A stretch of DNA of 64,000 nt from Saccostrea echinata. Lineage: Eukaryota. Below are positions 11 through 47,680 of this stretch, piece by piece; position 1 is the stretch's first letter, and each line of letters begins with the position of its first letter. A program made the position numbers and the translations under genes. The DNA lies in the NCBI RefSeq assembly GCF_033153115.1, contig NW_026889751.1, positions 8,804,001 to 8,868,000 on the forward strand, given 5' to 3'. The notes under the pieces were generated by a model. The model did no database searches. It saw only the letters and a list, made by a program, of their open reading frames with translations, and was not told the DNA's origin.

Positions 11-1394
11 ACTTGTGTAACACGGAGCCAGTACAACTAGTATTTGTTGTTGATACGTCTTTTAGCACATCAAGAAAAATATTTCAGCAACAAAAAGACT
101 TCATCTCTGATATCGTTTCAAGAGTAACTCTTGCAGATAATAAATTCAAGATAGCGGTTGCATCATATGGGGGAAATACAAACATTGACATAAAGTTTGA
201 TTCCTACAAAAACAATAAAACATTACTTCTTGAACAAATATCTAAGCTTTCATTCATGAATGGAACAACTGACATTCACAATGCATCGTACACCGTCAAG
301 AATTTCCTGAATGTCACTAAGGGAAGTAACCAGTTTGTGTTATTTTTCACGGACGGGATGCCATCTAATCTACAACTTGCTATAAACGGAACAGGAGAGT
401 TGCGGGCCCGTCTGCTAAATTCAAGTTCCCATAATGCTTTGATGTTTGTATCGTTTGGCAATGACGTCAGACATGTTGGTTTTAAGAAAATGTCGGGAGA
501 TCCGAGATATAAGGATGTGTTCAGTCACATTTCAATTAACCCATTCTATCAACTAGTAAGAAGGTTGATGGACGAAAAATGTGCAGGTATTATTTAACTA
601 TATATATTTGTTACGTAAATGTTGATGTTCATTGGACACATACATTACTCAAAAAATCATAAAATACCGTGTAAGAAAAGCATGTTTGTTAAACTTTAAA
701 ATTCAAATTACCTTGAGTTCTTTTGTCTTTGTTTAATCTAAATTTTTCTTAATTTTCAGCTTGCTATTATCAAGAGCTGGTGGATATTATGTTTGTTCTT
801 GATATATCTTCAATTATACCACTTAGTGCGTTCTCTGGAAGTTTAAGCATCATCTTTTCAATTTTAAAGCACCTAGAACCATTTGTTGTGCTAGCACCGG
901 ACCATACCCAACTAGGAGCAGTCTATTTCTCAAACGAACCTCATCTATTAATGCAGCTTAATCAATCTACGGATTTTAATAGTTTTGCTAGCAAACTTTT
1001 GAGCGTTTCTCAAGACAGCCATGGGTTTCAGAACGTCAGTTCCAATGTAGCAAAAGCTTTAGAATTCACAAGATCTCATCTCCTGTCCCCAGAAACTGGT
1101 GCGCGAGAATCGTCCAGAAAACTTATCATACATATTTACACTGGATTCGATTCTAATGCTACAAATTCTGCTGAAGTGGTAAAAGCGTTAACCTATGATC
1201 AAATCACTGTTTTTTCGATAGGAGTTGGAGACAAATACACATACGATGATGTCTTGTTAACCGCATCCAGCTCTTTTCATGCATTTTTTGCTGAATATGA
1301 TGAAAGGAAAGCTAAATGGGGACTGACGGAAACAGAATTAGAATTCATTAAAAATATTGATCATTTTACATGTACGAAAAGAATAAATACTTAA
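11..1394 (+). CDS. Gene 1 (3' end only): last two exons of an EGF/VWA-family secreted protein, VWA-1 (11-586) and VWA-2 (760-1394)
   Basis: Acceptor tttcag at 5-10. Exon 11-586 reads [19 protein letters not shown]...GTTDI...FFTDG (intact MIDAS), with donor gt at 587. Acceptor ttttcag at 753-759. Exon 760-1394 reads ACYYQELVDIMFVLDISS...CTKRINT*. Exon sizes (576, 635 nt) equal those of gene 2. Confidence 0.9.
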
Positions 1395-1741
1395 AATTGT
1401 TTTATCTTATACATTACAATTCTCTTTGCAAAAACTATGGTATATGTAGATGTATATTGTATGAGTAAAAGTATTTGTATTACATATTTATGACGTACAT
1501 TTGCTTTAATTTCGTTAGCCTTGAGAACAGGAAAAAAAAATAAATTGTCCTCTTTCCCCTTGAAAAAATTTGGGTCTTGACTTGAAAACTTCTTATATAA
1601 ACCACATATCTGGTATAAATCAGATGAAAAATTACAAAATTTTAAGTGAGAGAAAAATATATATGTTCTGGATATTATTAATTGAGAGCAAGATAATTTT
1701 ATCAATATTTTCTTAGGCTTTTTAAGCAAAATTAACGAAAA

Positions 1742-1744
<3 letters not shown>

Positions 1745-44600: not shown

Positions 44601-47600
44601 TATTGTCGAGATATATAACTATTTTCCTAACTGTAACTTGGAGATCTTTCGTAACAAATTGCTCAACTAAGGACACATCTCTTCCCCCAGCTTACTTTCA
44701 CTGGGCAACACAACAAACATCATTTTTAACCATCTCCCTTCCTTCGCTAAAACAATCAATCTACTGTGTAATTAATGATTGAACTTCTGGCAAGTCCTTT
44801 GTCTCCATAAAACTTTACAAATAGTTATATGATATTGCAAAGGAATTTCAAAGATATACGTTAAATTTTAAAGCCGTTCGTTGCTCGAGTACGACTGAAG
44901 CAACCATTGACATCATTTTCGCATTGTGACGTCCAAAACATGGAGCAAACATAACGTATCATCAGCCTTTTTATAGAACAATGGCTTGATTATGACTATA
45001 TATGTGTGCCAAATATTATTTTGATCTGAATTGTGGTTTTGTAAATATAGAGATAGTTAGCGAACTTTTTGATCACCCCTCGCATAATATTTTCTTATCT
45101 AATCCATTTGAATATTAGAGCAATTATTATAATTCATACACATGTACTCTTTAGATATTGATGAATGTGTAGCATTCCAGCCGTGTAAGAATGGAGGGAA
45201 CTGTACTAATACAATGGGGTCATTTGTATGTACTTGTACATCAAACTGGACAGGAGCTGTATGTACTGAAGGTATGATACATTTGTTTTGTGTGTTTGTT
45301 GTTTAACGTCACCACTTGTCGGTGGAGAGCTGCATATTAATACCTATACTCGGCACTCAGTTCCATTTAGCAATGCTAAATGCAACCTAATGCGACACGG
45401 GACTTCGGTTTATACGGTCTCTTCCGAAGGACCGGTCTCCACGTCCCGCAGTGGATTCGAACCCGCGACGTAAGGATCAGCTCCTGACTCCGCGACACTG
45501 GAGCAGACGCTCTAACCAATGCGCCACGCGGGCGACGAAATATTATGTGTATACTCTCTCTCTTNNNNNNNNNNNNNNNNNNNNNNNNNNNNNNNNNNNN
45601 NNNNNNNNNNNNNNNNNNNNNNNNNNNNNNNNNNNNNNNNNNNNNNNNNNNNNNNNNNNNNNNNNNNNNNNNNNNNNNNNNNNNNNNNNNNNNNNNNNNN
45701 NNNNNNNNATACATCCAGCTGATATCGGTATATACTTATTCAGATGTAGATGAATGTCGTCAATATCAATATCCAGGAAACCCTGTATGTAACAATGGTG
45801 ATTGTTACAATTTTGATGGTGGGTATAGATGTATTTGCCACACTGGGTACACTGGACCACGCTGTGATACAGGTACGTGTGACATACACTGAAATATGCC
45901 TAGGTATTCAAATTCTATCTATGTACATCGGTTTAAACATTTTGGGAATATATATACATGTAGGTGCTTTGCTTTGGCATATCTGTATTTATAAAATTAC
46001 AGGAGTCGAGTGAAGTTTTTAATAATGTTCTTTGGGACAGATATTACTGAGTGCAGGTTGGAGCCGTGCAAGAACAGTGGTTCTTGTGTTGATATCCCAG
46101 GATCGTATTATTGTAATTGTGTGAATGACTGGGATGGACCTCTATGTGAAAACGGTAGGTATAAAGATGTCATTCATAAGATTCAAGCTCAATGCATTGT
46201 TAAATTCTTGTATGAAAAATAATTTTAAATTCTCAAAGCAACCTAAAAGTGATGAAGCACACGACAATTTCTATAATTTTCAAATTAAATGATTGCTGAA
46301 ATCTTTTGCTAATCTTAAAATATTTCAGATCTTTGTAAAACAAACCCCACCAAGTTAATCTTCGTGATAGACTCTTCCTATAGTTCAGAAGGAGAAACGT
46401 TCAGAAAACAGTTGCAGTACATTACGGACATTGTTTCACGAAATACAGTTTCTAAAAGCAAATTTTCAGTAGCGGTAATCTCATATGGTACAGAGGCAAC
46501 ATTAGACATCGATTTTGACTCCTATGAAAACAAAACTACACTTCTTAGTTTAATTAAAAACATCAGTTTTGTCAACGGAACGACAAACATAGCATCGGCT
46601 TGTATCGAGGTCAAAAAGATATTGACATTAGCGCCCAGTGCTTTTCAGTTCGTATTTTTCTTCACCGATGGCATGCCATCAAGTTTGAGTGCTGCAGTAA
46701 GTTCCATTAGCGAATTGAGAAATGTCTTGAAAAGATCTAATGAGTGGAATGACATCTTCCTGGTGGCGTTTGGTGATGACGTAAGACATGAGGGATTTAG
46801 GCAGTTGTCCGGGGATCACCGATTCGGCGATGTTTATCCCAGCATTAATATGGAACCTCTGCATCAAGTATATAAGAGAACTGTAAACATAAGATGTTCA
46901 GGTATGGATTAGAATAAGCAAAAACATTTTTATATGATCAATACCCTTTGAAAAGAATAGATTCCAAATTACTCCCTTCTGAAGTAGACCTGCTTGAATA
47001 TTAAGTATTTGAATAATTTATATGATCAAAGTCCACATTTTATTTCAGCGTGCAAAGTAAGAAGGGATAGTGATATAGTGTTTGCTCTCGACACATCAAC
47101 CATTCAATCGCAGACTACTTACAAAGCCAGTCTAGGTATTTTTATACAACTTCTTCAATCCATGGATGAATTTGTTTTCTTAGGATCTGAGTATGTGCAA
47201 ATGGGTACCGTTCATTACTCTGATACCGCAGTATCATTTTTGCCGTTGAATTTTACGACCGATTTAGATACATTTGCAAGTACTTTTCAAGCCTCAAAGC
47301 AGGATAACCGTAACAGTTCGTCAAATCTTGCAAATGCTCTTCGGTTTATCCGGCAGGAAATGTTTTCGACCAGACAGGGGGCTAGAGACAACGCTTTGAA
47401 GTATGTTGTTTTCGTCGATAACGGATTAGATATCAAAATGACAGAGACTGTTAGCTTAGTAGAAAAAATGACAAAGGATGGAATTTCCCTAATCTCCATT
47501 GGTGTCGGGGAGAATTATAAACACAAGCAGGTGTTAAATACGGCTTCTAGTCCTTTCCATGCTTATTTTTCGGAACAGGATCCATCAACAAATCAGTGGA

Positions 47601-47680
47601 CTTTGCAGGAAACTGAGTTCGAATTTATCAAAAAACTAATTAATAGTAGGCTGAAGTGTACAAGTAGAGTGAATGCTTGA
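35610..47680 (+). CDS. Gene 4: signal peptide - SMB - furin site - VWA (canonical MIDAS) - 12 EGF - VWA - VWA secreted matrix-type protein, ~1137 aa, intact
   Basis: Exons: 35610-35823 (SP+SMB), 35965-36009 ([15 protein letters not shown]), 36333-36887 (VWA, DESGS..TDT..LTDG). EGF 37449-37559, 37634-37753, 37833-37943, 38543-38659, 38786-38899, 42891-43004, 43289-43402, 43686-43799, 43880-43999, 45155-45271, 45744-45872, 46041-46154. VWA 46329-46901 and 47049-47680. All introns are phase 1 GT-AG and the summed CDS is 3414 nt. Confidence 0.9.
36333..36887 (+). CDS. N-terminal matrilin/collagen-VI-like VWA exon of gene 4
   Basis: [17 protein letters not shown]...[10 protein letters not shown]...[10 protein letters not shown]...VFCVGIG, a full MIDAS. 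Confidence 0.9.
39215..39440. mobile_element. Small palindromic MITE
   Basis: ggccagattctacaaaagaacttgcgacttagaccaaaa versus ttttggtcttagtcgtaagttcttttgtaaaacgggcc. Confidence 0.7.
39876..41119. mobile_element. MITE with multi-unit cgcactttgaaaa inverted termini (related fragment at 28230-28370)
   Basis: The left array of aacgcactttgaaaaaa is mirrored by ttttcaaagtgcg arrays at 40980-41112. Confidence 0.75.
41310..42534. mobile_element. Non-autonomous TIR DNA transposon (Kolobok-like), copy B in a gene 4 intron
   Basis: TTAA on both flanks (41306-09, 42535-38); TIR agcgattctctgtaac / gttacagagaatggct. Confidence 0.75.
43497..43597 (+). pseudogene. Dead EGF pseudo-exon inside a gene 4 intron
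   Basis: [15 protein letters not shown]..(frameshift)..GWQENKCKT|gt with no AG at the expected acceptor position; positional equivalent of gene 3 exon 25978-26091. Confidence 0.75.
44219..45082 (-). mobile_element. Decayed mariner/Tc1 transposon relic
   Basis: Minus-strand terminus cgaggggtgatcaaaaagttcg and a C-terminal transposase-like peptide [19 protein letters not shown]. Confidence 0.6.
45281..45536 (-). mobile_element. tRNA-derived SINE (internally deleted copy)
   Basis: Same head gtcgcccgcgtggcgc and tail acgttaaacaac as 3845-4143. Confidence 0.85.
45565..45708. other. Assembly gap (N run) in a gene 4 intron
   Basis: Run of n; exon order in genes 2 and 3 suggests no exon is hidden here. 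Confidence 1.

Follow-up and report, generated by a model that had tools for sequence, protein, structure and literature searches.

We examined a 64,000-nucleotide stretch of the genome of the oyster Saccostrea echinata (assembly GCF_033153115.1, contig NW_026889751.1, positions 8,804,001 to 8,868,000; hereafter the window), which contains the larger part of a cluster of five old paralogues arranged in tandem, with copies gained and lost. The genes are built alike from a variable head, a stalk of epidermal growth factor-like (EGF) modules, and a tail of two von Willebrand factor A (VWA) domains. The window is AT-rich animal DNA (33% G+C), and four such units, on both strands, are visible from the open reading frames. 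Gene 1 (forward strand) is cut by the start of the window, inside which only its last two exons lie; gene 2 (forward) runs from ∼9.7 kb to 19.6 kb, gene 3 (reverse), a pseudogene, from 32.6 kb down to 22.2 kb, and gene 4 (forward) from 35.6 kb to 47.7 kb. When the whole assembly was searched with the first tail VWA domain of gene 4, exactly five copies came back, all within ∼135 kb of one contig. Inspection of the flanks, 30 kb upstream and 50 kb downstream, showed that the cluster extends past both edges of the window: the remainder of gene 1, comprising a NIDO head and 27 EGF exons, is found 0.1 to 15 kb upstream, and gene 5 is found 39 kb downstream, with a somatomedin B (SMB) domain, a head VWA, 26 or more intact EGF exons, and the VWA pair of the tail.

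The two VWA exons of the tail (V1 and V2) close every unit. Pfam and all other sequence searches were run on single exons, and the tail exons of genes 1, 2, and 4, together with an extra VWA in the head of gene 4 (V0), matched VWA with E values of 1e-16 to 4e-30. On the forward strand, V1 occupies positions 11 to 586 in gene 1 (E 1.6e-19), 17432 to 18007 in gene 2 (E 1.8e-22), and 46329 to 46901 in gene 4 (E 3.7e-20), while V2 occupies 760 to 1394 (E 2.8e-19), 18948 to 19582, and 47049 to 47680 (E 1.1e-18), respectively. The V2 exons of genes 1 and 4 end at a stop codon, and that of gene 2 is intact apart from one in-frame TGA. The tail of gene 3 (22167 to 24743, reverse strand) was delimited by alignments and conceptual translation, with V1 at 24743 to 24173 and V2 at 22783 to 22167. 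The V1 exons and V0 are phase 1-1, and V2 enters in phase 1 and continues to the stop. The metal ion-dependent adhesion site (MIDAS) is kept in V0 (DESGS, GGGTD, and LTDG) and in V1 (DTSFS, NGTTD, and FTDG; in gene 1 the DxSxS..T..D pattern is intact), and it is lost in V2, where the first motif reads DISSI, as in gene 1, or DTSTI, and TG or NG replaces TDG. Every VWA carries the usual cysteines near both ends. The frame stops about 10 residues past the last cysteine of V2 (...CTKRINT), and hydropathy of the exons reveals no membrane-like segment other than the N-terminal signal peptides.

The stalk modules are encoded by one exon each, 102 to 129 nucleotides long and divisible by 3, with borders of the form AG/AT...G/GT. 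Because each exon opens with the last two bases of an Asp codon and closes with the first base of the next codon, the EGF exons are phase 1-1. Pfam identifies the stalk exons as EGF or EGF_CA, and across the cluster the calcium-binding start (D/E-x-D/N-E-C) is present in 66 of the 75 intact EGF exons, as is, again in 66/75, the hydroxylation consensus C-x-[DN]-x4-[FY]-x-C. Gene 2 has 10 intact phase 1-1 calcium-binding EGF (cbEGF) exons (14351 to 17328, forward), gene 3 has 18 EGF exons, six of them damaged (24884 to 32221, reverse), and gene 4 has 12 intact cbEGF exons (37449 to 46154, forward). The last five exon types before the tail, F(Y/F)xG, CENxCG, SNWTG, GG(F/Y), and (N/D)WxG, follow one another in the same order in genes 1 to 4. 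EGF exons at equivalent positions in different genes are on average 61% identical, compared to 44% for different positions. The CENxCG type (16390 to 16509, 43880 to 43999, and 25707 to 25588) and a 'PCC' or 'VCC' type (15079 to 15195 and 38543 to 38659) contain seven cysteines rather than six, and the odd cysteine could pair between modules or between chains; the corresponding CENLLG exons of gene 5 have lost it.

Differences in stalk length can be followed within the cluster. The stalk of gene 5 (91837 to 102153 on the scale of the window) includes a block of four exons that has been duplicated, along with five to six SNWTG-GGF pairs in tandem, one SNWTG copy being truncated (100628 to 100741), and gene 1 has two SNWTG-GGF pairs; the stalks therefore lengthen by tandem exon duplication. 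The count of 12 EGF exons in gene 4 is a minimum, because the corresponding SNWTG-GGY pair is tandemly repeated in genes 1 and 5 and continuity cannot be demonstrated across one of the two runs of N in the window. This gap (45565 to 45708) falls in the gene 4 intron that precedes EGF exon 11, between the SNWTG exon, which ends at 45271, and the GGY exon, which starts at 45744; both exon borders are phase 1 and the frame is compatible. A repeat resembling a short interspersed element (SINE) stops 28 nucleotides before the gap, and the 35 nucleotides after it are unique. The other gap (20663 to 20808) affects no exon and separates genes 2 and 3, whose 3′ ends converge on it. A 4-kb intron of gene 4 (38900 to 42890) holds a high-copy repeat; the repeat (39300 to 41559) is represented by contigs of all four public sequencing runs at 100 to 300 times the exon depth and in many internal deletion variants.

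The heads that precede these stalks differ: genes 1 and 2 have NIDO, gene 3 has SMB alone, and genes 4 and 5 have SMB followed by a MIDAS-bearing VWA. In gene 2 the head (9734 to 11523, forward) comprises a pre-NIDO exon (9734 to 9846), NIDO exon A (10196 to 10474), and NIDO exon B (11334 to 11523), with Pfam NIDO matches at 10172 to 10513 (E 1.2e-14) and 11322 to 11582 (E 5.6e-5). Exon B ends in phase 1, which fits the first EGF exon, and the three NIDO-region exons and their order are common to genes 1 and 2 (40 to 61% identity in tblastn). Candidate signal-peptide exons with an ATG, a hydrophobic frame, and a GTAAGT donor in phase 1 were identified for both genes, a short one at 8160 to 8211 (forward) for gene 2 and one at -16763 to -16706 on the scale of the window for gene 1.

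The SMB heads were detected by Somatomedin_B matches at 35559 to 35882 on the forward strand (E 3.6e-6) and 32261 to 32659 on the reverse strand (E 3.9e-6). The first coding exon of gene 4 (35610 to 35823, forward) supplies an ATG, a signal peptide (hydropathy 2.9 over residues 1 to 19), and the SMB domain, and that of gene 3 (32392 to 32626, reverse) supplies a signal peptide and SMB domain that are still open; both end in phase 1. A predicted phase 1-1 mini-exon follows in gene 4 (35965 to 36009, forward), whose 45 nucleotides encode 15 residues including RRKRR, a furin-type match; it is open and is bordered by a strong acceptor and a GTAAGT donor. The next exon is V0 (36333 to 36887, forward), which is phase 1-1 and has a full MIDAS motif and a Pfam VWA match of 4.3e-30. 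The head VWA of gene 5 is 57% identical to V0, and the gene 5 SMB exon is able to splice in phase straight onto it.

It is nearly certain that the cluster specifies secreted proteins in which a head and a cbEGF rod precede a terminal pair of VWA domains. The domain content and the signal peptides predict that the products are secreted, multidomain extracellular proteins that are not membrane bound, and the phases point to splicing of the heads to the tails. A preliminary description of this DNA had proposed a modular secreted family with a common C-terminal block and variable stalks and heads, and the phase 1-1 exons agree with it throughout. Pfam and the exon borders bear out its statements that four paralogs end in the same two VWA exons and that the EGF and internal VWA exons are symmetric phase 1; the NIDO, SMB, and SMB-plus-VWA heads that it assigned to genes 2, 3, and 4 were recovered by Pfam, its EGF counts of 10, 18, and 12 were reproduced (the last as a minimum), and, as it stated, no transmembrane segment is visible, the signal peptides being the only stretches that resemble one. 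It had also described three complete genes sharing the same five final EGF exons: the shared order stands, supported by the positional identities, and the completeness does not, given that gene 3 is a pseudogene and gene 2 carries a stop.

Gene 3 has at least 10 lesions. V1 has suffered deletions of 1 nucleotide and 4 nucleotides, both frameshifting, and V2 contains several indels. In the stalk, the third EGF exon has a TAG (∼30490), the fourth has a frameshifting deletion (∼29620), and the exon at 28976 to 28859 is frameshifted (∼28920); further along are a Cys-to-Tyr change (∼26560), a GC donor at 25588, a TAA in the SNWTG exon (∼25331), and a frameshift in the GGF exon (∼25139). General assembly error is an unlikely source of these lesions because the neighboring genes are clean. 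Two fragments between the heads of genes 3 and 4 look like the remains of further copies: a frameshifted EGF exon whose splice sites remain (33257 to 33364, forward) and the second half of an SMB domain, below the Pfam threshold (34960 to 35100, reverse). Microsatellites of (TA)n and (CA)n lie at 21990 to 22120, just past the 3′ end of the pseudogene.

Gene 2, by comparison with gene 3, is damaged at a single position, a TGA at 19034 to 19036, 29 codons into the last exon. An orthologue from Saccostrea cucullata (P0194, a fragment named 'von Willebrand factor-like' at NCBI) is 89% identical to gene 2 V2, joins V1 to V2 exactly at the predicted splice, and has Arg at the position of the TGA, so that a single transition, CGA to TGA, separates the two. 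The TGA could represent a null allele carried by the sequenced animal, a loss that happened recently, or a base error; a search of the animal's own genome for a second haplotype copy of the exon, against which the TGA could be cross-checked, found none. Selenocysteine read-through was considered and rejected, as the orthologue has Arg there. Because the stop sits in the last exon, a product without V2 could still arise from gene 2.

The intact paralogues are old and under purifying selection. Between genes 1 and 2 and between genes 4 and 5 (tails and V0), amino acid identity is 57 to 71%, synonymous divergence (dS) is 1.2 to 1.7, and the ratio of nonsynonymous to synonymous rates (dN/dS) is 0.10 to 0.24; tails of the NIDO class and the SMB class are 39 to 48% identical, with saturated dS. 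The label "fast-evolving" given to the family in the preliminary description is not borne out by these values.

Relatives were sought with HMMER against 1.84 billion representatives. The close ones are exon-sized fragments of unannotated assemblies and a few bivalve gene models, unnamed or loosely named; the gene 4 V1 query found no long, closely related protein in this library, and a word-based search with the V1-V2 region of a Pinctada protein returned as full-length relatives only itself and one weak Sinanodonta match. Three predicted Pinctada imbricata models carry the tail behind different heads: NIDO-EGF-VWA-VWA (KAK3092689.1), VWA-EGF3-VWA-VWA (KAK3099469.1), and IgGFc_binding-EGF-VWA-VWA (KAK3100158.1), the IgGFc-binding domain representing a third head type on the same tail. 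Models from Sinanodonta, Mactra ('collagen'), and Ylistrum have the order VWA-EGF-VWA-VWA. The cluster proteins belong with these unnamed bivalve proteins, as the Pinctada models and P0194 have the V1-V2 tail, the kinds of head, and the EGF spacer of the cluster; the relatives differ in having only one to three EGF modules and no SMB head among those seen, and they are predicted models that have been neither named nor studied.

A tree of 52 VWA domains resolved V2 as a clade (support 99/92) and V1 as another (95/82), both including Pinctada, Ylistrum, Sinanodonta, and Mactra and thus four bivalve orders, and it placed the head VWA domains of genes 4 and 5 together with the Pinctada protein's first VWA. 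Among the oyster tails, genes 1 and 2 make up one group, genes 4 and 5 a second, and gene 3 a third, and every group has separate near relatives in the set of fragments. The V2 domains of all five oyster genes constitute one clade (99/98), outside which the Pinctada NIDO-type and VWA-type tails fall. Grouping by head type was rejected by the approximately unbiased (AU) test (p 0.011 and 0.003), a result to be read with the long Pinctada branches and with the fact that the tested groups were named after the first tree had been seen. Comparing tail trees with heads across bivalves, as the preliminary description had proposed, thus places the oyster tails together and not by head type. Heads and tails seem to tell different histories, consistent with either an exchange of heads or a long-ago homogenization of tails.

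Several named families approach this architecture without matching it. Matrilins share the layout of a secreted adaptor, and genes 4 and 5 have their VWA-EGF array-VWA order (as V0-EGF-V1), MIDAS motifs and terminal cysteine pairs in the VWA domains, and phase 1 EGF exons. Matrilins, however, end in a coiled-coil oligomerization domain, where the cluster proteins end in a second, non-MIDAS VWA, and the latter have SMB or NIDO heads and many more EGF modules. The cluster proteins have no coiled coil, as too little sequence follows V2 to accommodate heptad repeats, and they are therefore not matrilins. AMACO, the product of VWA2, is a secreted, matrix-associated protein with the order VWA-EGF-VWA-VWA, one or two EGF-like modules, and a further C-terminal EGF and unique tail; it has no SMB or NIDO domain. 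Its order fits genes 4 and 5, but these proteins end at V2 with no C-terminal EGF and are therefore not AMACO as defined. SNED1, after which oyster NIDO-EGF proteins are usually named automatically, begins like genes 1 and 2 with an N-terminal NIDO and a long cbEGF array. Its C terminus is composed of follistatin-like, sushi, and FN3 domains, whereas genes 1 and 2 have only EGF exons and then two VWA exons; lacking sushi and FN3 domains, they do not encode SNED1.

Cochlin and vitrin are secreted proteins in which a tandem VWA pair is the working unit, and in this respect they resemble the V1-V2 tail, as does PTMP1 of mussels. PTMP1 lacks an EGF rod and a head, and cochlin has an LCCL head, unlike the cluster proteins. 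A PDB search placed the N-terminal VWA domains of collagen VI alpha-3 and PTMP1 as the nearest solved relatives, and none of the searches brought up an AMACO sequence or structure. V0 matched both, with PTMP1 (PDB 4CN8) at E 1.8e-26, and V2 matched PTMP1 at 4.7e-12; the ESM Atlas label is 'VWA, mollusc COLA1-like'. One paper (PMC6337334) presents PTMP1 as a collagen-binding byssal matrix protein. The earlier view that the architecture is not a named family thus holds, with the addition that it lies close to known VWA/EGF matrix adaptors and that unnamed relatives are already in public bivalve annotations.

Taken as a whole, the cluster probably encodes secreted matrix adaptors or cross-linkers comparable to matrilins, AMACO, cochlin, and PTMP1, a reading that we hold with somewhat better than even confidence. 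In such a protein, a signal peptide would be followed by the head, by 10 to 27 cbEGF modules with one module per phase 1-1 exon, and by the five conserved EGF types with V1 and V2. The V1-V2 pair would attach to a fibrillar partner in the matrix, dependent on the metal ion on V1, the cbEGF rod would act as a stiff, calcium-loaded spacer that sets distance, and binding of a second partner would fall to the head. The length of the stalk changes as exons, singly or in pairs, duplicate in tandem. The binding partners, the tissue, and the adaptor role itself are inferred.

Several observations weigh against this reading. The signal-peptide exons of genes 1 and 2 are only candidates, and their sequences are not conserved between the two genes. 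The RRKRR site that had been noted earlier in the gene 4 head is indeed encoded by an open phase 1-1 exon; it remains a prediction, as no counterpart of the mini-exon was found in gene 5, the closest paralogue of gene 4. Of the three genes lying whole in the window, two are disabled in this assembly. The four small public runs (of uncertain type), when compared to positions 35560 to 41559, yielded almost only the intronic repeat and a few unspliced pieces, such as a contig spanning a gene 4 EGF exon into its intron, and no splice joints. The likeness to PTMP1 is at the level of VWA domains in general; V1 itself had no PTMP1 match at E below 1e-3. The architecture goes unmentioned in the shell, byssus, or adhesive proteome papers that were found, and literature searches brought up nothing else on it.

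The absence of spliced reads from the public runs also bears on the gene models, since the heads might be separate genes and the EGF-VWA units might have promoters of their own, and long introns are present: 2.8 kb between the head and the stalk of gene 2, and 4 kb within gene 4. We regard such mistaken models as very improbable: phases agree at every proposed joint, genes 1 and 2 agree with each other in the order of head and stalk, as do genes 4 and 5, no exons other than those of the head supply an ATG and signal peptide, and in Pinctada models NIDO or VWA heads are connected to this same tail. The main functional competitor to the matrix-adaptor reading is a role in recognition or immunity, for example as haemocyte or mucus lectin-like opsonins, in which variable heads would recognize targets and copies would turn over under host-pathogen pressure. 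Differing heads on a common tail, the IgGFc-binding head of the Pinctada relative, and the pseudogene, nonsense allele, and relic exons of the cluster are all what such a role might produce. The domains (NIDO, SMB, cbEGF, and VWA) are nevertheless typical of matrix proteins, and a dN/dS of 0.10 to 0.24 at a dS above 1.2 describes old, constrained copies with no sign of rapid turnover; we therefore consider an immune function unlikely.

The origin of the constant tail can be explained in more than one way. Gene conversion within the tandem cluster may have homogenized the 3′ blocks of old NIDO-type and SMB/VWA-type genes, without any shuffling of heads. This explanation accounts for the presence of NIDO-type and V0-type heads in both Pinctada and the oyster while the Pinctada tails fall outside the single clade of the five oyster V2 domains, and it is in keeping with the AU test and with the physical adjacency of the genes. 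Since the tails of the two head classes are only 39 to 48% identical, with saturated dS, any such conversion must be ancient, and the comparison depends on one Pinctada gene model per head type, on long Pinctada branches, and on groups named after the first tree; we see conversion as a real possibility, though on balance not the expected one. Alternatively, the five-EGF block and V1-V2 would be a bivalve-specific, self-contained anchoring or polymerizing cassette that was repeatedly recombined by exon shuffling within the cluster with NIDO, SMB, SMB-VWA, and, in pearl oysters, IgGFc-binding heads, the rod being tuned by duplication of exon pairs. This version is speculative and rather doubtful; if true, it would represent a natural plug-and-play linker system for building shell, cement, or mucus matrices.

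A Ty3/gypsy-type long terminal repeat retrotransposon occupies 52584 to 59776 of the window on the reverse strand, with an open pol frame of 1543 amino acids (RVT_1, RNase H, and integrase) and a PNMA-like gag frame. The SINE-like repeat, ∼240 nucleotides long, has copies at 3903 to 4142, 12431 to 12500, 45310 to 45536, and 50205 to 50444 that are 79 to 83% identical.

These results constitute a finding at the level of annotation, as each of the domain types occurs commonly in the genomes of molluscs. The family is not wholly new; it represents a bivalve variant, without a name so far, of VWA/EGF matrix proteins that are already known. The analysis defines an unnamed VWA-VWA tail unit shared across bivalve orders. 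The cluster provides a well-preserved case of phase 1-1 exons enabling changes of head and rod length, in which living copies and a dead one are found next to relic exons. Should the tail turn out to anchor the proteins in a matrix, the family would become a candidate constituent of the shell, the adhesive, or the connective matrices of oysters, as well as a model for module exchange versus gene conversion.

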